From Salpingoeca rosetta (lineage: Eukaryota > Protista > Choanoflagellata), in NCBI GenBank assembly GCA_033442325.1, contig JAWQFM010000031.1:732025-796024 (forward strand): a stretch of 64,000 nucleotides of DNA, written 5' to 3'. The stretch's first letter is position 1; each line of letters opens with the position of its first letter. Below are positions 1 through 46,294 of this stretch, in pieces. The notes under the pieces are model-generated. The model was not told the origin of the DNA. It worked only from the letters and a program-made list of their open reading frames with translations, and made no database searches. The translations under genes and the position numbers were made by a program.

Positions 1-73
1 AAGCCCATCCGAGACGGCACCTTCTACGACATGTTCGACTGGGTCAGGTCCTCCAAAACAAAGTACCAAGGTT

Positions 74-115
<42 letters not shown>

Positions 116-405
116 GTCTGTGTGTGTGTGTGTGGATGCAGCTGAACAGGCATGTGCGCTGTTGTTGCACACCCCCAACGGCTTCGTCTTTCCCCATTCC
201 ACTGCGTTTATCCGTGCTTGCAGGCAAGCTCCAGATTGACGGGCGCACGTGCGACCAGTGGCTGTTTGTTGCGCCCACGGCCACCCTCACCATGTGCACC
301 GACGGCAACACCCCCGTCCTCCAGTCCGTCTACTCCGACTCCACAAAGACCGTTCGTTTGTCTGCCATTGTGTGTGTGTGTGTATGTGTGTGTGTGTACA
401 TGCGT

Positions 406-457
<52 letters not shown>

Positions 458-644
458 TTGGTCACTAAAGGTCCCACTCGTGTGGATTTTCCGGCTCGTG
501 AGCCTGCAGTTCCGATGTGGGTTACCATTTCTCGAACGCTCAAGGACCATTGGGTTTTGGGTCAGGATACGCCGTATACTTACCGAAGTTAGGGGAAGTA
601 ACCCAACTAGGTGTACAATTTTCGCTGCGGCGTGTTGCGGTACG

Positions 645-723
<79 letters not shown>

Positions 724-1015
724 CTGTGTGTGCCTGTGTGTGTGTGTGTGTACTTGTGTATCTATGAATGCGTGTGTACTGTATTCCTTTCCAACCTCAG
801 ACTCACCGGGTTTCACCCCCTTGCAACTCACACAACACGTGTTCTTTGCTTCCAACAGTCGCAGTCGTTTGTGTTTCACAAAGACTTTGCACCCCACCCG
901 GACCCCTTTGACAAGAGCATCTTTGACCCTCCACACGAGTGCAACGTGCGACAACGCGACTGTGCAGTGTGAAGTTGCTCACTGCGTGTGCATGTGTGTG
1001 TGTGTGTGCAGAAAA

Positions 1016-30070: not shown

Positions 30071-30926
30071 CGCTCGTCGTCGATGTGGCGGGGTGGTCTT
30101 TGTGGCAAGGCAGTGGTGGAGGTGGGTTGTGTTGTGTTGTGGAGTGTGTCAGAAAAATGGAGCACGACAGCACATAAAGGAGTTGATTGCGGCTGGAAAC
30201 GAAAACATACAGCACAAATTGTTGCTTGATTCTGCTGACTCAGCTGCCCCAGTGATTGAAGGGAAGTAGGAGCTGACTTCGCCACAGCTTCGCCACAGAG
30301 AGGGCGCGATGCGGATTGTTTGTGGTCATTTTTCGCCAATTTTCGAGCCATGATTCTCCTTGCTTGCAAGCATTCGCTGCAGCAGCAGAGGATATGACGA
30401 TGCGCATGCACACAAAAGCCACACAAAACACAGCAGTGACACGTTGCTGAGTACACGGCGATGTTTCGCAACTGCGCTTCCATCGGCGATGTCCCCGCAG
30501 AGCACTCCCACACGCACACACGCAGGAGAAGCAGAGCGAGTTTGTTTGTTTGTTTTTCCGTCGTGACATCCCCACCGCTGTGGGGCATGCAGAGGAGAAT
30601 GAAGCGGGGAATACATGGGCTGTTTTCTCTTTGTTTTGGTTTGTGTTTGCGGCGTGGGGTTGTGCGTCAACAGCCCGCGCCAAAAGGACAGCAAGCATGC
30701 ATGCCAGCCAGAAAAGAAGCGAAGAAGGCCGCGCAAGCGCGTTAGCTTCAACTTGCAATGGCAACAACAACGACAACAGCCGCGACAACAATGCCTGTGC
30801 CGCCTTCACAACTTTAGCTGTGGGAGAATTCGTGATGCAGAGCACTTGCGTCGTCGCATTTCTCCTTGCACCAATATCACCACCTGCAACAACACCAGCA
30901 ACAACACCTGCCTCAGCCAAGCGCCG

Positions 30927-31625
30927 ATGTCTCTGGTATTGCAGCCACGCCCTACACCGAGGGTGCGGCGTGGATGCGTTGCACTCCTGGTTCTGGCAGT
31001 GAGCCTTGGGGTTCTCGCCGTTTCCCATCCACTTCAAGCTAAAGCCCTGAGGTATGCGTGCATGTGCATGTGTGACTGTGACTGTGAGTGTTGTGTGTCT
31101 GTGTTTTTGTGTTGCGTTGTGTTGCATTGTGGCTGTGTCTGTGTTTTGTTGCATTGTGGCTGTGTTTGGTTGGCGTGGACGTATTTGGGTGGCTTGCCAC
31201 ACTGCCGTCATCGTCGTGTAGTTGCCCTCGCATCACGAGACAGCGCTATCCTCACACCCAACTCGAAACGGCTTGCCTCATTCGTTTTGGCCCCCCCTTC
31301 CCTTTACGATCCCTCACATGCTTTGTTGCGTGCTTTGATCTTGCTTGTCTGTGTGCTTTGCTGTGTCTCTGTGTGGCGTGTCCTGCGACTGCAGTGCTTC
31401 AGCAGATTCCTCCTCCCTCCCTCGCCTGCGTCAGCGCCGTGATGTGAGATGCGCACTTGCGCTTTATCGTTTTGATTTGATGATGCACACGTCAAGCGAG
31501 TTTGTGTGGTTTGTGAGCGCGTGGCTCATGTGTCAACTGCGCGTTTTGCTCCGTGTGTGTGTGTGTGTGTGTGTGTGCGTGTGTGTGTGTGCGTCTCTCT
31601 CATTCACACACGCACACACACACAC

Positions 31626-31658
<33 letters not shown>

Positions 31659-32767
31659 TGCACGCACCCCCTCCTGCACGCAGGTCCCGTCTGCTCCCCC
31701 GAGGAACCCGACGACCACGCCCACACCTGGTGGCGCGTTTGCCGTTTCGTGGGAGGCGCCCGACCCCGGCACGACCAACGGCGCCATCACCGGGTATGTG
31801 ATCCGCATCCGCCCCACCGCTCCACAGCCCCCGACGTGGGCCTACGGCAATGCCAGCCTCGACGCCACGGACGTGGAGGTGTCATCGAGCACCTTCTCCT
31901 ACACCCTGGCCGACGAGCTCTCGTTCCCGTTCTCTGGCTACGATGTCGGCGTCGCCGTCAAGAATGCCGAGGGCTTTGGCCCCTTTGCCATGCTCTCCGT
32001 CGACCCGCCAAACAGCATTCCGTCCGGCCAGCCGCGCTCCGTGTCCACGTCCCTCCCACCTGTGGACCCGATGACCTACCCGCCAGACGCGGACGAGGTC
32101 ATCGTGCAGTGGACCGTGCCTGCAGGCATCTGGTTCCGCAACGCGCCCGCCATCGGCTTTGACCTCGTGGCCACGCCCGTGCCGGGCAGCACCACGGACG
32201 AAGTGGTGACCGTCCGCTTCCCCAAGCAGTGGCAGGACGGCGACTCGCCCGACGAGCAGCTCACGGCGTCCATCACGGGCCTCACCCCGAACACAGAGTA
32301 CGTCGTGCTCGTGTACACGATTGGGCTGGACGGTGACCGCAGCACCGCTTCCTTCATGACCACGGAGAAGACGCGTCCGCACCTGCCCACGGTTGCACCT
32401 GCGGGCCTCAGCGTAGACGACACCTCTGCCACGACCTTCAACCTCTCCTGGGACGCCATGAGTGCCAGCACACCGGGCAGCAATGGCGACATCGTTGGCT
32501 ATCGCATCTACCACGTGCCCACCGCCGACCGCGGCTGCACCAACATGGCCTGCGCCCCACCCACACCCTGCCAGGAGGACCCGCGCTGCGAGTTTGGCGT
32601 GTGCACGTACACCAACAAGCCCAACTTCACATCCTGTGATGATGGCAACGCCCACACCGTCAGCGACCACTGTGAGGCCGGCGCATGCATCGGCACCCTC
32701 GTCAACCAGCACATCGATCAGCAGCCCGTGCACCGCCACATTTACATGAACGTGAGTATTTTGTTTG

Positions 32768-32800
<33 letters not shown>

Positions 32801-33043
32801 TTGTGTGTGTGCGTGTGTGTGTCTGTGTGTGTGCGTGTGTGCGTGCGTCTGTTTGCGTGCTGCGCCTGTGCTTGTGAATGCGAGCTAATTTTGCGCTCGC
32901 TGCTTTCCTTGATTTGCAGACGCGCAGCCATGGCGGAGGATATATGCCTCGACTCGGCGAGTTCTGGTGAGGACGGATGCAACAGCCGGGGAGAGGGTTG
33001 AGTCGAGTTTTGGTCGCTTGCGTGTCGTTTTCGCACACACACG

Positions 33044-33099
<56 letters not shown>

Positions 33100-34469
33100 C
33101 ACTCACACACACACACACACTCACACACACACACACTCGAACGCACACACGCACGCACGCACGCGCTCGCAGGTACCCTTCTTGGAGTGGCTCCAGCGTC
33201 TACAGATATGCAGAGGATGGCACGTACAAGACCAACTTTGGCACCAGCTCAAGTCAGATCATGCAGCTGTGGGGCGAGCCTGACTCGCTGTACTACTACA
33301 CCGCCAACTGGGGGTACAATTACTGCCGCAAGATTGGGCCCTTCCCCAGCACCAGCGTGAGGTGGACGTACACCCCGTCCCCTGCCACCACCGTCGGAGG
33401 CATCGCAACAGACAGCAACTACGCATACTGCATTCAGAACGGGCGATCCACTGTGCACGTGCTCAACAAGGAGACCGGCTCGCTCGTCCGCACGTTTGAC
33501 CTGACTGGCGGCAGCATCGGCAGCCTCAACGGTGGCTTTGCAGTTGTCAACGACAAGATCTACTACGGCACTGGCCAGTACTTCTACCGCCACAACCTGG
33601 AGGATGGCACCTTTGATGGCTTCAGGTGTGTGTGTGTGTGTGTGTGTGCGTGTATGGAGTTGTACGCGAATGGTTGGACGTGCGTGTGCGTTTGCATCAG
33701 CCCTAATGTCATGAAGCTGATGCAGTGACACTCACATGCTGTCGCCTATCCTTCCACTTGTTCTCAGGTTCCAAACCATTCAGACCATCAGCAACATGGC
33801 ATTCACGGGTCAGGACTTGTGCATCAGCCCCAACAGCGATAACGTGTATTGCTATCAGGTGCGGTCATGTGTGCGTGTGTGTGTGCATCTATGTGTGTGC
33901 GTGTGCGTGCGTGCGTGCGTGCGTGCGTGCGCGCGTGTGTGTGCTTATTCATTGAAATGCTTCACGCTGTCACCCCTCCCCCCCAATTTCCTCGTCCTCC
34001 ACACTCCCTGCTTCGCTTCAACGGCCTCATTCACATGACACCACTCTGCTTCAACTCACACCGCCCCTCAGGTCATCTCACACAACATCTGGAAGCCCGA
34101 CGATGGCGCACATCTGCTGGACACCGTCAACGCATACACTTCACTGTATGTTCATATCTAGCGTTCCAGCGCTGTGCGTGGCACACATGTACTTGGTGTG
34201 CATTGTGTGCAGTTGTGCATCGTGCGCACACGTGATTTGTGCAATTGTGTTTGTTATTGTGTTCATTGTGTTCATTGTGTGCGTGGTGTGCGTGTGCGCT
34301 GCCCTCGTCGTGTCTTCTCATCTCTGGTGCCTTTCGTCTTCCTTCTCTTTTCCCTTCCCAATCTCCGCAGGTCCATGAACACACGCTCCTACGCCGGCGG
34401 CTTTGCGCCCATGCACCGAGAATACTGGTGCGTGCCTTGAGAGCAACCGCCCTGAATACCCTCAAGCCG

Positions 34470-34546
<77 letters not shown>

Positions 34547-34548
34547 CG

Positions 34549-34595
<47 letters not shown>

Positions 34596-35544
34596 TTCGG
34601 TTTTTGCACCCGTTCACCCCGTCGTTGTGTGATCTGCGTCAAATTGGTTGCACAGGTACCCCTACTGGTCAGGTTCAACCATCTACCGGGTACGTGAGGC
34701 TTGTGATGGGGTCTTCATGTAGCATTGGTGTGGTTGTTATCTTTCACCTTTCAGCTGTTCAGGCACTCTCTCTTTCTTCTCTCTTGCTGGCATACATGTG
34801 TGTGTCTGTCTACCTGCATTGTGCCCGTGTCTTACTGCCTCTCTCACTCACACACACATACTCTACACACACACACACTCACACACACGCACACACACAC
34901 ACACACATGCACACACTCACTCACACACACTCACACACACACTCACACACACTCTACACACGCACCAACTGGCACTTGCAGTACACGTGGAAGGGCTACT
35001 ACATTGGCGCGTTCAATGCCGTGAATGGTGTTGGGAGCATCCGCCAGCTGTGGGGATCCCCCGACTCGCCCCACTACTACCTGGCTGCCAGCAACTACAT
35101 CTACAAGGCCACGTGGCCGCAGAACCAGCTCGTGTGGTCCTACAACCTTGGCACGACTGCTGGCGGTGTCACCACGCACGGCGACAGCGTGTATGCTATG
35201 CGAGCAACGACCAACCTCGTGTATGTGCTGCGCGCGACGGATGGCGAGCTGCAGCGCACGTTCAACCTGGACTCGTCGAGCGGCGATAACTTCTCCAACA
35301 TGTTCGGTGGCTTGGTTGCTGTCAAGGGCAGGCTGTTCCGTGGCGGCAGAGACAACGCCAGGTTCTACAGGTCAGTCGGCGGTAGTGTTGCGATATGTGT
35401 GATAGTGTGATAGTGTGAACATGCGTGGACGCGTGTGTGTCTGTGTATGCATGTGTATCCCATGCGTCATGCGTAACAACGACCCTCATGGTACATCCTA
35501 TGTGTATGTTTGCGCGCGCACACACACACACACACACACACGCA

Positions 35545-35603
<59 letters not shown>

Positions 35604-36197
35604 CCAACCAACCAGGCGGTGGCCACGACCTTCGTTTCTACTCCAACTGTGAGCGCGTTAGCACAAACCCCAACAGCTATCGAATCGACACCGGAGGTTA
35701 CTCCAACTCCTGGGCAACCGGCTCCAGCAGCATCTACGTCGATGAGATGGAGGTGTTCTACCTGACCGAGGACGCGTATGACCCGTGCGATGGTATTGTG
35801 TGCCCAACGAACCCGTGCACCCCCACCAACGTGTGCCAGCTTGGTGTGTGCGTGTCCACCACCATCCCTGACGGCACCCCCTGCGACGATGGCGACGCCA
35901 CGACGGCGTTTGACGCATGTGTCGCTGGCCAGTGCGTGGGTGCTGCGCGGTACTCCAACACGTCCTCCTACACCCTCGACGACCTCCACCCCGGACGCAC
36001 ATACGCCGTGCAGGTGCAGGCGTACACCAGCATTGGCGGCGGTCCGCTCAGCGATGCCGTTCACGGCACCACACTCGAGGCGCCACCATCGTCTGGCCCT
36101 GTGGACGTCGCCGGCACAGCACTGTCTGATTCGAAGATTAAGCTCACATGGAACGCACCAGCCAACCCGACACACAACGGCCGCCTTCTTGGCTACG

Positions 36198-36237
<40 letters not shown>

Positions 36238-38263
36238 TTTGTTTGTGTGTGTGCCTGCATGTGTTTTGCTGTCTTGTGTTTCCGTTTGTGGTTGCTTGGC
36301 ACTGAACCAGCTTTCAGCTTTGGCCGTGTTCACTTGTTCACCTCCACCGCTGTCTCCCACCACTCACTTCAGGTGTACATTGCCTCTGCTGGCGGCCCGG
36401 CCGCGTTCGTGACGAGTCTCAACTACTACACCTTCACGGTCACGGGCCTGCTGCCTTACACGGAGTACACCTTCTACCTGACCACGTTCAACGGTGCTGG
36501 TGCGTCACCGCCATCCGAGAGCATCACTGTGCGAACACAGGAGGCACCGCCCGGCCCACCATCCAACGTGCAGGCTGACGAGGAGCTCTCTGACAACGGC
36601 GAGGTGATCACCGTCAGCTGGCAGCCGCCGTACGAACCAAACGGCATCGTCATCAAGTACACCATCTACTACCAGAAGTGAGTGATTTTGTGTATGTGTG
36701 TGTGTGTGTGTGATTTAGCGCTTGGATGCACTCTTTACGCCATGCTCACACGTGGCGATTCCTCTCTTGTCCGAATCATCGTCGTCCCCTCAGGCTCGGT
36801 GGCACGTGGCAGTCCGTGACCACGTCCAGTGGCAGTGTGCGGTCCGTTGAGATTGATGGCCTGGACCCCATCTCCACCTATGTGGTGCAGGTGTCTGCGT
36901 GGACAGCAGCTGGCGAGGGCGAGCGCAGCAACACCATCGCGCCCACCACCGGTCAAGGCATTCCCCGCACGCCGCCCGACAACGTCGACGCCAACGCTCT
37001 CAGCAAGACGGCCATCAAGGTGTGTGTGTGTGTATGTATGTATGTACTAGTTGCACTGCCTCGCTCACTGACAACACCACTCATTCCCCACTTCCCACCA
37101 CCCCACCGCGCCCACCAGGTGACGTATGACCTGCCGCCGTCGGATGAGGGCGAAGTCGTCGAGTACAGCATCTACTACACACCAGGTGCGCTGGTGCATG
37201 ATGGATGGTGCGAATTGTTTGAACCAATCACATGTCGGGACTGATGCTCTCGTGCTTACATCGTCAGTCGACATGAGCATTATGCCATTCGTCACCTCAC
37301 AGTGTCACTACGTGGCTGTGTGTATGTGTCCTTGTACTGAACCCCAGAGCCACTTCCTTCCTCATGTGAGGAAATCAGCTGTCACGCTCGCGACACCTGC
37401 CACGATGTTGGCGAATGCATCCACGATCCATTCGTAAGTATGTGTGTGTCTGTGTGTTCGCACGGAAGAGTCGCACGAGCGCCAGCACCAGCACATACGC
37501 ACACATGCACATGTGATTGTGTTCGCGCGCACTAATGACTCCTGCATGTCCTTGTCCAGTATGGTCCAATGTGCACCGCTCCGGCCAAGCGCGATGGCAC
37601 CGAGTGCGACGACGGCGACGACAGGTGAGCCGGGACCCTTGTCGTTGTCATCGTGCACTCTCGCAGGACATGCGTAGAACGAGCATGCAGTTGTGCGTTT
37701 GTGGTGCCTGCCTTCACTGTAGCTCTCATACGCCATGTACGCACGCGCGCGCACACACACACACACACGCACATGCACCTACACACACATAATACAACGC
37801 GCTCACAACGTACCTACACGCCGCATGTGGCCGGCTTGCAGCACTGGCTTTGACACGTGCGTGATGGGGCAGTGTCGCAGCGTGCCGCGGCCCCAGCCCG
37901 TGTCTCCAGTCACGTCGACGTTCAGCGGCACGTGGTCGACACGCAGTTACGGCATGGCATACAACCCGCGCCGCAACGAGTGGTGGTTCCCCGAGTACAC
38001 ATCTTCGTCCACAGGCACGGTCGTTTACCGGTGAGTGGGGCTGCTGTTACAGGGGGGAGGCATTGTGTGTGCTTCCACGCTCCGTGTCATGCACGCACAA
38101 CCAGACTTTTCGCACTCTCGCACATTTTCTCACATCCTGTCCATTGCATCGCGTTGTGTTGTGTTCCGCTGCCGGTATCAGGTACTCTGCCGACGATCTG
38201 ACGACGCTCGTTGGCCGCTTCCGCATCCAACAGCGCCGATACGTGAGTCGCATTGCTGGAGTT

Positions 38264-38340
<77 letters not shown>

Positions 38341-38981
38341 CGCTGTGGCATCACACATGGCATCCTCAACCGTCTCCTCTCACTTCTCATTCCACACAAA
38401 TGCCCTGCACTTTTTCTTCTTGGTTGCGTGCTTGCAGCTGATGCAAATATGGGTGCACGTGGATGAAACGTACCTGCTCAACACCTACACGGACAACTAC
38501 GTCTACCGCTACGGCCCCTTCCCTCTCGTGACGGTGAGCATGCATGCTTGTGTCTGCGCGCCTGCGTGTGTGTGTGTGTGTTTGTTCGTGTGTTTGCCAG
38601 TGTGTGTGTGAAAATGCGTGTGTGTGTTTGATTGATTGCTTGTTTGTGTCTGTGTGTCTGTGTGTGTATGTTCGAACGTGTTTGTGGCGGTTGTGCGTCG
38701 TGCAAGCAACCACACGTGCACCACCATGACCATACACTCACGCGTCGATGCTTACCATGGCGTCAACCTATGCCCTGCAATACTTCTTCCGCCTCCCCTT
38801 GCCACAGCAACTCTGGGCGTACAACTTTGGCACGACCGTTGGCGGTGTGTCGCTGCACGATGGTGTCGTGTATGCCATGCAGAGCGGCAGCTACAACATC
38901 CGCGTCCTCGACTGGGAGACGGGCCAACTCCAGCGCTCTTTCTCGTCAGTGCATTCGGAGGCACTTCCTCTGTGTACCTGC

Positions 38982-39031
<50 letters not shown>

Positions 39032-41365
39032 TGCGTGTGAGTGTGGTGTGTACCTGCTCCGTGTGTGTGTGTGTGTGTGTGTTTGTGTTTGTGTTTGTGT
39101 CGTCGTACTCAACTTGGACTTAGCGTGCTTGCTGTCGTCTCACGAACGCCACTCTTCCTTCCACGCCCTGCTCCCCCCGCACACCACGAACAGGCTGAGC
39201 GGCTCGCCTCAAGGGTTCTCCAACATCTACGGCACATTTGCAGTCGTGAGCAACAAGATCTTCGTCGGCGACTACAACGACAACGACATGTACCGGTGAG
39301 CGTGATGGCTCTTGTGTTGCTGTTGTGTGGTCATGTTAGTGAACTGTGCTTCTGCTGTGTAACGATGCGCCTGCATGCATGCACACGCATTCAAGCAAGC
39401 ACACGCTCATACGCGCGCACACACAATTCACACACACGCGCGTTTGCCTTGCCACTGTGCCGTTTAGATTTGATCTTCAAACGTATCAGTACGACAACGT
39501 GCATTGGACGGCCTCGTACCAGACACAAAAGCTTGGCTTTGACGGCCAGCATCTCTGCATCGCTTCAGGGGATCCTGTCGAATGCTGGAGAAGTGAGTCG
39601 CCGCGCTCTCGCTTGTTTGGCTTCATTTTCTGTCTCATGGCTCTGGCCACGGGTTACATCTGCATCTGTGTCATGCTTGTCTCTTTGCTATCTCCGATAC
39701 ATGCCCTCATCCCTTCAACTCATCATCACTTCAACCCCTCGGCCAACGCCACCCCCGTCTTGTTCACCGCACGTGATCACCGCAGTTGTGGACGAGAATG
39801 TGTACGGCGACCGCACCGTCATCTCTGCCAATGCGCCGGCACAGGCCATCATGGGCTCTGAGATCCTGACAAAGGACATGAACCTGGCCATCTCCAAAGA
39901 GGTGTCGCCCAACAGCGATTCGAGCTTCAAGCTCTGCTTCCGCGCATCAGACCACGGCTTCTCCGGCTCCACCTTCCACGCGCGCTGCGACAACAAGGGC
40001 CAGACGGTTGTCGTTGTCCGTTCGACAGAGGGCAGCCCGCAGGGACCGCGCGTATTTGGCGCCTTTGCTCCCAACAGCTGGCGGTCCGACACGTCCACGT
40101 ATCTCCGTGCCGATGATGCCTTCCTCTTCCGTTTTGTCAACAACGGCCAATTCGAGCGCACAGATCTCCTCAACTATCCGGAGTACGCCCAGTACACGCG
40201 CCCAGGCTACTGCCCTGAGTTCGGTTCGTTGTCGTCGTATTTGTGTTTGTGCATGTATCTTGTGTTGGTGTTGATGGGCTCGGTTGCTCTTGCCTTCGTT
40301 GCTGGCGTGCGCAAGTCCGTTTGCACACACACACATGCACTCACACACATGCACTCACACACACGCACTCACTCACTCACCTTGCCTCACTCACTCACTC
40401 ACTCACTCACTCACTCACTCACTCACTCACTCACTCACTCACTCATTGACGCACATGCAGGCAACTCTGATTTCCGCATGTCAACGGACTGCCGGTCCGG
40501 ATACACCAGCACGAATGCTTACACGTGAGTTTAATGCATGCAGTTGTGTTTGGACTTCAATGCATCTGTGCTGCAACAAATGTTGTCATTTCCTCATACT
40601 CATCGCCATCCATGCTGTTGCGTGTATCCGTGCTATTGCTGAGCGCAGTGTGCACCAGAGCAGCAGCACGTACAACAACGAGTGGTTGACTGGCTCCTAC
40701 AACAGCTGGCAAGTGGATGACGTCGAGGTCTTCTACCGCGTCGACGAGTCCGCAGATCCATGCTTCGACGTGGTGCGTACAGCAGCGCTCGCGTGCACTT
40801 GACACGTCATTGTGAGCGAATGTGGGGGTTGCGTTTGTCCATGTTGCCAGTGTCACGAATCCCTTCGTGTCAATCTCATCCTCGTGTGCATCATGCATTG
40901 TCCAAACAACACAGACATGTGATCCACCAATGGGTCAGTGCAAACTGCCCGGTCGCTGCGTCAGCGGCGAGTGCGTCTATGATGTCGCCCCGAATGGCAC
41001 CCCATGCAACGACGGTCAGTATTGCGAAGTGTGTGTGTGGGAGGGGGGAATCTATGCGTTTGAGAGCATCGAGTCGCCATTGCACGCCTCCTCGTTCCTC
41101 ACCAACAAACACACAAACGTGCCACTCCCCTCCGAACAACGCACCCTTTGCAGGCGACGATGCGACGGTGTTTGACACGTGCCAGGACACCGTCTGCGTT
41201 GGCCGCCATCCCGTCATCACGGAGGACAACCAGCACACGTTCACTGGCCTCAACCCGTACACCACCTACGCCTTCCGTGTGGCTGCCCGCACCGTCCGCG
41301 GTCAGGGCCCGGCCTCTGACGCCGTCCGCGCCCGCACTCTCTCCGGCACCCCAACAGGTTGGCGC

Positions 41366-41453
<88 letters not shown>

Positions 41454-42984
41454 CGTGCTTTGAGTGCGCGTGATTCCTTCGCCTGGCTGCCTTGTCCCTC
41501 ACACACGATCGTTTGTGCCCTGTCCTCATCCACGTGCCATTTCTTGCCTTTCCTTCCCTCCTCAACCCTTCAGGTCCACCCCAGGATGTGGTGGCGCGAG
41601 CGGCAGCAACGACCGTGTTGCACATCACGTGGAAGCAGCCGCTGTTTGGCGAGCGCCACGGCACCATCTCATCGTACAAGCTGTGGGTGCAGCGCCTGAA
41701 CAGCATGCGCCAGCCAGCGGGCACACCCTGGACCATCGTCACGGGCAACGACCTCACCAACTACAACCTCACAGACCTCGACGCATACACATACTACCAG
41801 GTTTGTGTGGGTGTATGACCGTGTTGTTGTTGGCATCATTTGCTCAACTTGCTCTCTGTCTTTATTGACCGGGTTTGTACCACCACGCACACACACGCAC
41901 ACACACACTCACGTACACACACACACACACACGCACAACTGCAACAACCACAACAACAGGTCAAGGTGGCTGCCTCCACCATTGATGGCCTGGGTCCGTA
42001 CAGCGATGCGTCGATTGCTCGAACAGCAGAGGGAACACCACCCGTTGCACCAACGAACGTGCAGGTGGACAGCACAACAACCGAGACTGTCACGCTCAGC
42101 TGGGACCCAATCAGCCCACTCGAGGCTGATGGCATCCTCATTGGCTACACCATCTCTGTGCGTCAGGGACCAAGGAGCGACTGCACACGCCACCCCGCCA
42201 GCATCGACGTTGTCTACATCGACACACCACGTGTTGAGACCTACACCGTGCTTGAGTTGGAGGACACTGCTGTGTATCCGTACGAATTCCAGGTTGCAGC
42301 CCGCACTGCTGCTGGCGAGGGCGTGTACTCTGCATCAGCGCTGCACATGACGAGCGGCGGGTCGCAGGTGTGCTCCGGCCCGTCCACGTGGACATCAGAT
42401 GTCACCAGCACATCCGCCAACGTGTGGGTGAAGCCACCGCCAACGGTTGAGCTGAACGGCAACACCATCGCCACCATCAACGTGACCGTCACGGCCATCG
42501 AGGACTCCAATCGCCGCCCCATCACGGGCGCAACACCGGCATGGCTCGTGTTCTCTGCTGCTGATGGCTTCAACGCCAGCCAGGCGCTGTCTGGGCTCGA
42601 CCCGTACACGGTGTACAGCGTGGAGGCCGTGGTCATCACCACGACTGGCGTGTCTTCGCCCACGTCTGCTCCCTACACGTTCCGCACCGCCGAAGCGACG
42701 CCAGGTGCTGTGGGCTCCCTCATTGCACAAGAGGTTGGCGACGTGGTGAAGGTGTTGTGGACGCCGCCATCGCCGGCAAACGGAGCGCTTCAGTATCGCA
42801 TCACATTCACGCCCGCCGTTGACGGCACGAGCGAATTCACCACGTCCTACGCCAACTTCAGCCTCGACGTCCTCTCGGTTCGTTGTGTGTGCGTATGTAT
42901 GTGTATTTGTGTGTCTGTGTGTATTTGTGCATGTGTGTGTGTGTGTGTCATCTTGCAAGCACCCTTAGTGGACAGCATGTCACT

Positions 42985-43028
<44 letters not shown>

Positions 43029-44359
43029 CACACACACACACGCACACATTCTCCACCTTGGGTTTCTCTCCTTGCAGGGCACGACGTACACCGTCAGGGT
43101 TGTTGCGCTGACGGGCGCAGGTGATGGCCCAGCACGCCAGACGACGGTAGAGACTGTCCCGGCCAACGTGGCTGCACCTGTCATAACGCTTCAATCCGCA
43201 GCAGAGACAGAGCTGCGGCTCAAGGCCACTTGGACCAGCCCACTCACTGCCTTCCACCTCCAATACAAAGCAGAGGGGGTGAGTTACGTGCGCGTATGCT
43301 GTGTACGCGTGTGTGAATGTGAACGTGTGTGCACTTGCATTTGTGTGTTGGTTGCTTCCCTCAGATGGTGCTTCTTGTCCACTCACTAAGCTTCACATGC
43401 GTGTTCTTTGCTTCTCTCATGTCCTTCTTTGCTCCACAGGATGATGATTTCAGCGATGTCATGGACTACGCCGTGTCTACCAATGCACGTCAACACACCT
43501 TCACCCTCTCTGGCCTGGAGCACTCCACATCCTACACCGTCCGCGTTCAGGCCGACACCGACGATGGTCTCGGCCTCACCGCCCAATACGAGCACGCCAC
43601 CGCCGTTGTTCCTCCAAGCGCCCCGCAGACAGTCGTGGTGCGTCATTGAATGTGTGTGTGTGTGTGTGTGTGCGCGCGCGCGTGTGTGTGTGCGTGTGTG
43701 TGATGGCTGTCTTTGCCAGGTGCCCACTGTACTCACCAACGCCCGTTCACATACACGTGCATACACACACTCTCTCTAACAGGCCATGGCCGTCAACAGC
43801 ACGCACGTGCGCGTAACGTGGTCTCCTGTCATGGCTGAGCATGGCTGAGCATCGCCTTGGCGAGGTGCGCGGGTACCGCCTGTCCATCGAGCAGGGCATC
43901 AGCCTCCTGCCACCAATCGATGCCGGCCTCACCACGTGGTACATCGTTGGCCGTCTCAACCCCGTCACCACCTACCGCGTCTCCGTGATTGCGTACAACG
44001 ATGGCGGTGATGGCGATGCCAGCTCTCCGCAGTCGGTCATGACAGCGGCCACCGTGTGTGCAGATGACGAGTACGAGACGGCGCCACCCATGGGGGCAAT
44101 GGACCGCCAGTGTGGCCCCTGCTCGTCGTGCGGCTCTGGCATGTACGAGACGGCCGCCTGCACGCGCACCAGCGACACGATGTGCGCCGCATGCAGCACC
44201 ACCTGTGGCGAGGACGAGTGGATTTCGTCGCCCTGCACGGCCTCGTCCGATATCGAGTGCTCCGCGTGCTCTACGTGCGACCTCTCGGTCGAGAGCCACG
44301 TGGCCGACTGCACCCTCTTCTCCGACACCGTCTGCGTCCCATTCACCACGTATGTGTGT

Positions 44360-44412
<53 letters not shown>

Positions 44413-46294
44413 CGTGTGTGCGTGCATGTGTGGTTGTGTGTGTGGTTGTGTGGTTGTTGTGTGGTTGTCTCGTTTGAGAGTGTTGCAATGTTCAAGGCGT
44501 CTGCACTCAATTTCATGCGCGTGTGTGTGTATTGGCATTCACCATTGAGCAGGACGACGACCACGACCACCACAACCACAACAACGACTACTCTGCCAAC
44601 AACGACGTGAGTTGTCAACAGCAAACACAGAGCGTGCACCACACCCTTGCGTCCTCCTGCTTTGCTTCACTGCGTCTGTTATTCCCTGCGTGCTTGTACC
44701 TCCACGCTTGCTACACTTGCGGTACGCGCACCCTTGATGCTCACGCACCACACACCACACACCTCATCCTCCGCAATCATCACGACCAGCGTTCCATGCC
44801 ATCCAACGTGCGCCACGTGTGCTGGCGAGGCAGCTGACGAGTGCCTGTCGTGCCACGGCAGCTACAGCGTGTACCTTGGACGCTGCGTGCCATCGTGCCC
44901 CGCCTCCACATACAAGGAGAGCGGCCAGTGCTTGACATGCCCCGCCACGTGCGACATCTGTACGAGTGCTGACGTGTGTGTCACGTGCCGTCGCGGTTAT
45001 TTCCGCCATAATGGCGCGTGCGTGGAGGCCAGCAGCTGCCCCACTGGTTCCTACGCTGACGCCGACCTCGACACATGTGTGCCGTGTACCGCTGGCTGCG
45101 CCACGTGCAATGCCGATCGCTGCACGCAGTGCGCTGGCACCAAGCTGCTCCTGCCAACTGGCGATGAGTGCGTGGACGCCTGCCCGGACCAGTACTTTGC
45201 ATCCACCACGACGCTGGGCGCACGCGAATGCAAGGCGTGCGACACCTCGTGCAAGTCGTGCTCTGGCACTCTGCCGACACAGTGCACGGCCTGTTTCGAT
45301 GGCGAGGAGCTGAAGAGCGGCCGCTGCGTGCTGCCGGGTGGTGGTGGCACGACCAAGAGCCCAACAACACGTGACCCGTCTGCCTCCCAGTCTGGCACAG
45401 ACAGCACTGCTGACTCGAACACACTGATTTACGTCGCTGTTGCTGTTGGCGCCGTCATCGCCCTCGCCCTCATCATGATTGGCGTCGCGCTGCTTCGCCG
45501 CAAGAACGCAAAGGCAGCCAGTGGTGGTGCACACAAGTTTGATGGTCAGCAGGGCTCTACCATGGCTTCCTATCGCTCCGGCTCTCTCCACGGCCGTGAC
45601 ATGGTCATCTCCAACCCAGCGTACATGCTAAACGAGCCAAAGCCGTGGACCGAACAGCAGCAGCAGCAACAACAACAACAGCCGACGAAGAGACCCGCCA
45701 ACGACGCCGACATGGAGCGTGAGTGCGTATATGTGTGTGCGTATGTGTGTGTGTGTGCATGTGTGGCATGTGGGAGCTTGCTTCAGTTCCATTGATACAT
45801 GCATTCAACTCACCTGTGACTGCTCTCGTCACCACTCCGTGTTGTTGGTACAGCACTCTACGAGGACCAGGACATGTACGACGATTGTAAGTTGCAGACG
45901 TTGCCGTGCTCGATATCTCATTTCATGGCGTGTGCTACGAGTGCGTGCAGCTGCAGCAGCTGTTGCTGTTGTTGTTGTTGTTTCCGTGACATGCACATCC
46001 CAGCGTGACATGCACATCCCAGCGTGACATGCGCCCCCAGTAACACACACGCTCACACCATCCACTCGCCTTTCTCTTCGGTTGTTGTCCTGTGCCTCCC
46101 TGTTCATGCGAGCAGCTGAGCAGAATGAGGGCGGGTACCTGACCGTCAACCCCGACGATGATCGGATGGCCGCTGACAACAACGGTACGTCGCAGGATGA
46201 CGGCGAGGCCTTGTACGACGAGCCGTCCGCCATGCTGTCGCACAAGGACGAGGAGCATGAGAAGCCCCGTGATGACGACAGCAATGACGAGTGA
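30927..46294 (+). CDS. Giant type-I membrane receptor/adhesion protein: signal peptide, RQRR site, ~12 FN3, Cys-rich CDDG repeats, 3 beta-propeller-like repeats, 2 TLDc (first incomplete), TNFR-like and furin-like repeats, TM helix, Tyr-motif tail. Two frame lesions in this assembly
   Basis: Exon 1 30927-31051 ([22 protein letters not shown]). FN3 motifs ([25 protein letters not shown]; [19 protein letters not shown]). TLDc [41 protein letters not shown]-like [18 protein letters not shown]. Furin-like [42 protein letters not shown]. Stop at 46292-46294. Confidence 0.85.

Follow-up and report, generated by a model that had tools for sequence, protein, structure and literature searches.

FN3 domains predicted to host nested propeller and TLDc cassettes in a surface receptor of Salpingoeca rosetta

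Two interrupted FN3 domains at the PTSG_09826 locus

The window, a 64,000-nucleotide stretch of the genome of the choanoflagellate Salpingoeca rosetta (GenBank assembly GCA_033442325.1, contig JAWQFM010000031.1, positions 732,025 to 796,024; G000:C31:732025-796024 in the 55.4-Mb assembly of 68 contigs that was searched), carries on its + strand the gene PTSG_09826, the 2429-aa product of which (P0154) maps exactly to the window in 32 exons, with GT-AG introns throughout. At two places in this gene the first half of a fibronectin type III (FN3) domain is separated from the complementary second half by 3.4 kb (FN3 no. 1) and 4.2 kb (FN3 no. 2), with a cassette of other domains lying between the halves (Table 1). 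We propose, with a probability of roughly 0.85, that PTSG_09826 encodes a type I surface receptor with a chain of FN3 domains as ectodomain, one of seven paralogous loci in the genome, and that two FN3 domains of this chain host nested folded cassettes while their separated halves refold into single domains. The initial annotation of this stretch had described such halves twice in one receptor, and did not recognise the nested architecture from any described receptor family; both pairs of halves were recovered where it had seen them, with the same peptides, and no description of the architecture was found in the literature searched.

Domains were located with Pfam models, including fn3 (84 columns), and with four profiles of our own, derived from sequences that HMMER recovered among 1.84 billion representatives, for FN3 (96 columns), the Cys repeat (54), the propeller (174) and TLDc (172). 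The search for split fn3 hits that had been suggested as a check gave N-halves ending at column 38 or 39 and C-halves starting at column 46 or 48 of the Pfam model, and the C-halves run on to column 82 or 83. When each insert was removed in silico, the joined halves matched our FN3 profile as one full-length domain (columns 2-94/96 of 96) with 76.2 and 79.3 bits, compared with a median of 58.5 bits for the 27 intact FN3 domains in the same proteins. Half hits are rare (of 2129 FN3 hits from 157 proteins, only 43 match an N-half and 47 a C-half), and all cassettes with both flanks resolved (11/11, in five proteins) sit between a complementary N-half and C-half. Among these are three cassettes of P0001 from Microstomoeca roanoka, both cassettes of PTSG_09826, the single cassettes of PTSG_06573 and PTSG_09376, and the second cassette of PTSG_13098; the C-flank of a twelfth, cassette 1 of PTSG_13098, is hidden by an assembly gap. 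The placement of complementary halves around cassettes is, on these counts, more than chance.

Table 1. Features of the receptor gene, with positions in the window
Feature	Position	Strand	Evidence
Receptor gene	31684-45800	+	Exact exon map and colinearity with M. roanoka P0001
Split FN3 no. 1, N-half (strands A-B-C)	32386-32523	+	P0154 397-442; Pfam fn3 columns 2-38/84, 20.1 bits; own profile columns 2-44
8-Cys repeat 1a (CDDG motif)	32536-32694	+	P0154 447-499; own profile columns 1-54, 51.5 bits
Five-bladed beta-propeller 1	33198-34074	+	P0154 543-716; own profile columns 1-174, 234 bits
Five-bladed beta-propeller 2, truncated	34681-35371	+	P0154 768-900; own profile columns 1-131/174
Intron with deletion scar	35385-35615	+	blastn against the C35 paralog: two (CA)n tracts that flank three C35 exons fused into one
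TLDc remnant, last ~50 residues only	35618-35770	+	P0154 906-956; own profile columns 122-172/172
8-Cys repeat 1b	35786-35941	+	P0154 962-1013; own profile columns 1-54, 46.8 bits; exon shared with TLDc remnant and FN3 C-half
Split FN3 no. 1, C-half (strands C'/E-F-G)	35954-36082	+	P0154 1018-1060; Pfam fn3 columns 46-83/84, 35.2 bits; own profile columns 54-96
Two intact FN3 domains between the cassettes	36083-36956	+	Own profile columns 1-96 and 2-95, 88 and 72 bits
Split FN3 no. 2, N-half	36963-37352	+	P0154 1258-1300; Pfam fn3 columns 2-39/84, 17.7 bits
8-Cys repeat 2a, three exons	37365-37878	+	P0154 1305-1361; own profile columns 1-53, 38.5 bits
Five-bladed beta-propeller 3, six exons	38023-39787	+	P0154 1410-1586; own profile columns 1-174, 201 bits
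Complete TLDc domain	39848-40745	+	P0154 1607-1785; Pfam TLD columns 5-167/170, 80.6 bits (cut-off 24.5)
8-Cys repeat 2b	40761-41203	+	P0154 1791-1844; own profile columns 1-54, 46.7 bits
Split FN3 no. 2, C-half	41219-41341	+	P0154 1850-1890; Pfam fn3 columns 48-82/84, 34.3 bits
Five further FN3 domains	41351-43580	+	Own profile
TNFR-type Cys-rich repeats	44057-44335	+	Pfam TNFR_c6, E = 3e-15, 3 stretches
Furin-like Cys-rich repeats	44809-45327	+	Pfam Furin-like_2, E = 1.5e-9
Predicted transmembrane helix	45424-45495	+	Read from the open reading frame; basic residues next; aligns with P0001 transmembrane helix
NPAY motif	45613-45624	+	Read from the open reading frame; aligns with NPVY tail of P0001

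An artefact, with halves stemming from different genes or transcripts, from mis-joined exons or from mis-assembly so that no single nested protein exists, would be in keeping with the flaws of the deposited gene model, namely doubtful 5′ exons and an early end at 43779, and with the model of the paralog at the C35 locus, which skips an assembly gap. We nevertheless regard it as highly improbable. Both junctions of cassette 1 lie uninterrupted within single exons and are therefore independent of splice prediction: the N-half of FN3 no. 1 and the adjoining Cys repeat 1a share exon 31684-32751, and exon 35616-36199 runs from TLDc through the Cys repeat and the FN3 C-half into the next FN3. The N-half of FN3 no. 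2 is spread over three exons, 36794-37019, 37119-37185 and the opening bases of 37348-37433. The same nesting was looked for in other proteomes, as had also been suggested, and was found in P0001, a complete 4500-aa open reading frame (ORF) from the de novo M. roanoka transcriptome which has three cassettes, a signal peptide, a C-terminal transmembrane helix and an NPVY tail. A Joint Genome Institute (JGI) metagenome contig likewise holds propeller, propeller, TLDc, Cys repeat, FN3 C-half and FN3 in a single 829-aa ORF, and thus leaves the C-side junction unbroken. Within S. rosetta the layout is common to seven genome loci (C31, which is the window gene, C35, C14, C34, C30, C17 and C3), each of which has an unbroken ORF of FN3 N-half plus Cys repeat and, 3-4.5 kb downstream on the same strand, the junction of TLDc C-terminus, Cys repeat and FN3 C-half, which is unbroken at six of the loci and split by a gap at C35. 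A ratio of non-synonymous to synonymous substitution rates (dN/dS) of 0.03-0.06 also speaks against an artefact. Finally, thirteen runs guessed to be RNA hold a fraction of 0.26-0.43 of the sampled words of 32300-41400, with an exon-only estimate of ~0.42, which is suggestive only, as the paralog shares words.

Cassette contents and a deletion in the first cassette

The cassettes have the order of an 8-Cys repeat, one or two five-bladed beta-propellers, TLDc and a second 8-Cys repeat, and the inserts measure 549-757 residues with four or five folded domains. For cassette 1 a Cys repeat, two propeller-like repeats, a TLDc C-terminus and a further Cys repeat had been noted initially, and this series stands with two amendments: each of the propeller-like repeats is, by fold match, a whole five-bladed propeller, and only the C-terminus of TLDc is present, as ~940 bp found in the paralog are missing from this copy of the gene. 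The propeller 1 exons are 33173-33625 and 33768-33858. The second cassette, described as Cys repeat, propeller, full TLDc and Cys repeat, was borne out by our own profiles and by the Pfam TLD model; a full-length TLDc match (PF07534) was obtained for cassette 2 and not for cassette 1, the remnant of which gave no match to the Pfam model. In the Pfam scan of the window proteins, no family exceeded its threshold on the 8-Cys CDDG repeat, and neither an olfactomedin nor a glutaminyl cyclase family was among the matches of the propellers, which comprised only sub-threshold PQQ_2-type hits of 12-29 bits. Arrays of the 8-Cys CDDG repeat, with tens of copies, were also seen in giant proteins from both diplonemids (Diplonema, Artemidia, Rhynchopus) and acanthoecid choanoflagellates (Savillea, Diaphanoeca); the array bearers from both groups are P0008, P0010-P0012, P0015, P0016 and P0023.

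The C35 locus (PTSG_13098, P0007) is a segmental duplicate of the window gene with 84-98% nucleotide identity. Compared with it, the window lacks ~940 bp with three exons (G000:C35:736930-737872, L009, versus window 35372-35616), which encode the last propeller blade and the TLDc residues up to the CPTFG motif, and the C35 counterpart of propeller 2 covers columns 1-166 of the propeller profile. Cassette 2 of this copy is intact; from cassette 1, the final part of the second propeller and some two thirds of TLDc appear to be missing. With its fused (CA)n tracts, the deletion looks like the product of microsatellite-mediated unequal recombination or of an assembly collapse; (GT)n/(CA)n tracts are abundant in the introns of the + strand gene as a whole (~31.6-45.8 kb). 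There is no N in the deletion region of the window, and with a 235-residue query from the paralog, spanning the propeller end and TLDc, the genome search found only residues 161-234 in the window. The C14 paralog is uninformative for dating the deletion, since an 811-N gap covers the region.

The loss raises the question whether cassette 1 is a decaying duplicate, unable to fold after the deletion, with a transcript that is either frameshifted at the donor at 35372 or encodes a crippled head, in which case the nesting would not be functional twice in this receptor. The removal of the three C35 exons by deletion is in its favour, as is the reading frame, since the ancestral donor at 35372 would shift it and joining the ancestral sites leads to a stop after 12 codons; the truncated region with the TLDc remnant also has low confidence in the predicted structure (predicted local distance difference test, pLDDT, of 37-57), and the genome search yielded no orphan contig with the missing exons. 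On the other hand, the donor of the deposited model at 35385, 13 nt further on, gives a GT-AG intron that keeps the frame (predicted join 35384 to 35616), and an assembly collapse between the two (CA)n tracts may account for the missing sequence. Strong purifying selection is seen on both cassettes, a pattern that gene conversion or a very recent deletion would mimic: cassette 2 has a dN/dS of 0.03 against the C35 paralog (18 synonymous and 2 non-synonymous changes in 610 codons), and the remaining exons of cassette 1 have a dN/dS of 0.06. The cassette is, by these ratios, under purifying selection, and we consider decay of cassette 1 unlikely while still a serious alternative.

Identity to C35 varies by exon over 31684-41800, from 83% to 100%, with 95-100% in cassette 2 and 83% in exon 33173-33625, and this mosaic between the C31 and C35 copies suggests gene conversion. 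An N gap (G000:C35:738278-738379, L009) falls inside Cys repeat 1b of the C35 copy, and the PTSG_13098 model has therefore spliced out this repeat together with most of the FN3 C-half. At its 3′ end, too, the same model is truncated, stopping at the equivalent of window position 41800.

Predicted structure of the split domains

The initial annotation had named structure prediction as the way to see whether the separated halves fold as one FN3 sandwich, and for cassette 2 the prediction agrees with it. The part of the receptor with an FN3, the split FN3 with cassette 2 and the next FN3 (P0154:1158-1995) was modelled with AlphaFold2 from a 13-row alignment and compared with 48,161 Protein Data Bank (PDB) representatives using VIA-align. 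The cassette 2 model has a mean pLDDT of 79.6, with 80-89 in the FN3 halves, the N-half of which forms strands at model residues 106-114, 117-123 and 132-142 (pLDDT 80-89) and the C-half four strands at ~691-731 (pLDDT 83-89). Since three strands (A, B and C) precede the insert and four (C′, E, F and G) follow it, the insert lies between strands C and C′. The tandem FN3 pair of PTP-delta (Fn1-Fn2, 4yfe_B) aligned to model residues 99..838 with 189/193 residues at a root-mean-square deviation (rmsd) of 2.2 Å (Z 16.8), a match that is possible only if residues 99-143 and 693-736 together make one FN3 beside the next FN3. Similar matches were obtained with the FN3 pairs of LAR (6tpu_B, Z 18.6) and integrin beta4 (3f7q_A, 187 residues aligned over model residues 1..734). 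The cassette 2 halves are thus predicted to rebuild a canonical FN3 sandwich in line with its neighbours.

Within the insert of the same model, the propeller and TLDc have pLDDT values of 72-93, and the Cys repeats, which the initial annotation took for putative out-and-back stalks displaying the head sideways from an FN3 rod, are low at 51-70. The TLDc domain matched NCOA7B (7uzk_T, Z 20.4, rmsd 2.1 Å) and OXR2 (4acj_A, Z 20.0), and the propeller matched a glutaminyl cyclase (3mbr_X, Z 20.1, rmsd 2.9 Å, 210/236 residues) and olfactomedin propellers (Z ~16-17; 5amo_B, Z 16.7). The AlphaFold2 model of cassette 1 has a mean pLDDT of 71.6, with 55-86 in the FN3 halves, and it also matched glutaminyl cyclase (3mbr_X, Z 20.7, rmsd 3.0 Å, 210 residues). 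When the two FN3 halves were co-folded as separate chains, the interface score ipSAE (interaction prediction score from aligned errors) was 0.53, compared with 0.00 for the best control, with runs agreeing in at least 94% of contacts and a partner pLDDT of at least 78.

Several observations weigh against the proposed refolding and its reading as a receptor module. The profile scores of N1+C2 and N2+C1, the cross pairs, equal those of the native pairs, and profiles cannot tell which halves pair; the fold-match lists of cassette 1 are filled by propellers, with no FN3 row among the matches listed; and the structural evidence is itself a prediction from that 13-row alignment. The mark used for co-folding was reached by 51/78 solved complexes and 2/108 mismatched pairs, and in the range up to 0.60 there were just 5 of the 78 solved complexes, along with every one of the 4 passing mismatches, so that co-folding of the separate chains supports re-pairing weakly. 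In a homolog search with P0154:800-1030, no fragments derived from transcripts turned up across the deletion junction; the TLDc proteins known so far bind V-ATPase in the cytosol; and the function of the cassette is something we purely infer. The first and second of these points, with the weak co-folding result, would fit halves that are real and do not re-pair within their cassette, whether as vestigial half-domains, by pairing across cassettes (N1 with C2), or by a strand swap that drives oligomerisation. Such an arrangement seems improbable to us, as the single-cassette proteins PTSG_06573 and PTSG_09376 offer each half one possible partner, the cassette 2 model places both halves in one FN3 at 2.2 Å from a solved pair, and each half reaches a pLDDT of 72-79 only when folded with the other half, versus 40-57 in controls.

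Relation to known receptors and a possible role

The closest precedent for the proposed refolding is FnIII-2 of the insulin receptor, where an FN3 of a type I receptor is likewise interrupted in sequence and is still one domain. The insulin receptor's insert domain lies in the C-C′ loop of FnIII-2. In the insulin receptor and IGF1R it carries the alpha/beta cleavage site (PMC2577065, PMC10560217). Insulin-receptor ectodomains aligned across the split in the cassette 2 model (4zxb_E, Z 17.1, 280 residues, 3..838; 8cls_A, Z 16.8). However, that insert is ~120 residues long, largely disordered and furin-processed, whereas the inserts described here are 549-757 residues and folded, and no furin site was noted at the PTSG_09826 junctions. 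ROS1/Sevenless, with nine FN3s and three six-bladed YWTD propellers as consecutive domains (PMC11743138), resembles PTSG_09826 in having a large ectodomain that mixes FN3s and propellers, and gave the top Foldseek matches by domain composition (E = 5e-20 to 6e-15), with rmsd values of 27-63 Å in global alignments. In contrast to ROS1, Sevenless and LDLR-type proteins, the propellers in PTSG_09826 are five-bladed, are accompanied by TLDc, and are nested in FN3 and not arranged in tandem.

The likeness of the propellers to plant and bacterial glutaminyl cyclases (3mbr_X, Z 20.1-20.7; 2iwa, Z 19.2), olfactomedin-1 (Z 15.4-16.7) and gliomedin (Z 15.9-16.0) is at the level of fold only and not family-level sequence, with 9-15% sequence identity in the glutaminyl cyclase and olfactomedin matches. 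The cassette 2 TLDc domain superposes on NCOA7B, OXR2, Skywalker and mEAK7 with Z 18-20 and rmsd 2.1-2.4 Å, and these solved relatives are cytosolic, several of them having been solved bound to V-ATPase V1 according to PDB entry titles. Unlike the OXR1/NCOA7-type, TBC1D24/Skywalker and mEAK7 proteins, the cassette TLDc would be extracellular by its topology, away from cytosolic V1, because it lies between the signal peptide and the transmembrane helix in P0001 and upstream of GPS-7tm_2 in PTSG_09376. In the latter (P0060) a split-FN3 cassette (293-1138) is part of an adhesion-GPCR-like (G protein-coupled receptor) ectodomain, followed by GPS and a secretin-type 7tm_2 region at 1470-1770. Since PTSG_09376 joins the cassette to GPS and seven transmembrane helices (7TM), the module would serve at least two receptor types, extracellular by topology in both.

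None of the papers in the literature searched names PTSG_09826, PTSG_13098, PTSG_06573 or PTSG_09376, and none describes the nested FN3 insertion of such a cassette, a choanoflagellate TLDc with FN3, or an extracellular TLDc. What appears to be new is therefore an FN3-loop domain insertion of unusual size and content, the principle of insertion being already known. Few building blocks are commoner in animal receptors than FN3, a domain treated like a bead on a string; in PTSG_09826 the bead would host a folded block of 550-750 residues and apparently still folds, which indicates that the C-C′ loop may tolerate very large grafts and bears on the evolution of receptor architecture as well as on the engineering of FN3 scaffolds. 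It would also place outside the cell a domain until now known from cytosolic V-ATPase regulators. The cassette family occurs in the closest living relatives of animals, on single-pass receptors with NPxY tails and on an adhesion GPCR, and bears on the pre-metazoan repertoire for surface recognition.

We propose that a cassette was grafted between strands C and C′ in two FN3 domains of the chain, and that the halves of each host fold back into one beta-sandwich. With the sandwich in register with its neighbours, the cassette would leave and re-enter the chain at a single loop. The standard FN3 topology puts the C-C′ loop at the C-terminal pole, so that the cassette would be expected to project where the next FN3 joins on, giving a branched ectodomain. 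The propeller and TLDc unit would most likely form a ligand-binding head for prey, matrix or neighbouring cells, and binding would be coupled to uptake or signalling via the NPxY tail, or via the 7TM region in PTSG_09376. S. rosetta is genetically tractable, which makes the function of the cassette testable.

Outside the cassettes, the Salpingoeca kvevrii transcriptome ORF P0018 has a split FN3 at 588-928 (profile columns 5-45 and 51-80) with a different insert of ~270 residues, which contains Cys, matches no Pfam family and terminates with one Cys repeat, and this suggests that the same loop hosts other grafts. After strand C of FN3 domains in the FN3-rich proteins P0075, P0147 and P0131, there are inserts of 140-210 residues which are rich in Ser, Thr and Pro and probably disordered. 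Generic FN3 proteins dominated a homology search with the cassette alignment, which revealed no further proteins with the cassette, and a search of a protein atlas with the cassette had a best score of 0.77 and no usable lead. Only as a tentative extension, for which we hold the odds to be unfavourable, would we suggest that the FN3 C-C′ loop is a general socket for grafts of folded domains in choanoflagellate surface proteins, giving branched ectodomains, and that the extracellular TLDc has a role independent of V-ATPase, for instance in recognising ligands or prey; if true, this socket would be a principle of design for which no animal FN3 receptor has been described.

The receptor assignment of PTSG_09826 draws on sequence beyond the deposited model, whose exons span 30615-43779. 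Colinearity of the window with the M. roanoka ortholog P0001, over the C-terminal 600 aa of the latter, reaches as far as 45732, and PTSG_09826 is classed as a type I receptor because the TNFR-type and furin-like repeats, transmembrane helix and NPAY motif lie downstream in the P0001 order. Most likely the gene continues past the model end with an FN3, TNFR-type repeats, a furin-like Cys-rich region, the transmembrane helix and an NPAY tail; the end at 43779, inside an intron-like stretch, is probably too early, and the downstream exons would belong to the same receptor by this colinearity. The exon joins over 43637-43860 are provisional in our gene map. At the other end of the gene, the first two exons of the deposited model (30615-31443) are doubtful, and an alternative start, MSLVLQ followed by a hydrophobic stretch, is likelier. 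A direct GT-AG join from the exon ending at 32751 to that starting at 33173 was rejected as out of frame, because a 47-nt exon (32920-32966) intervenes.

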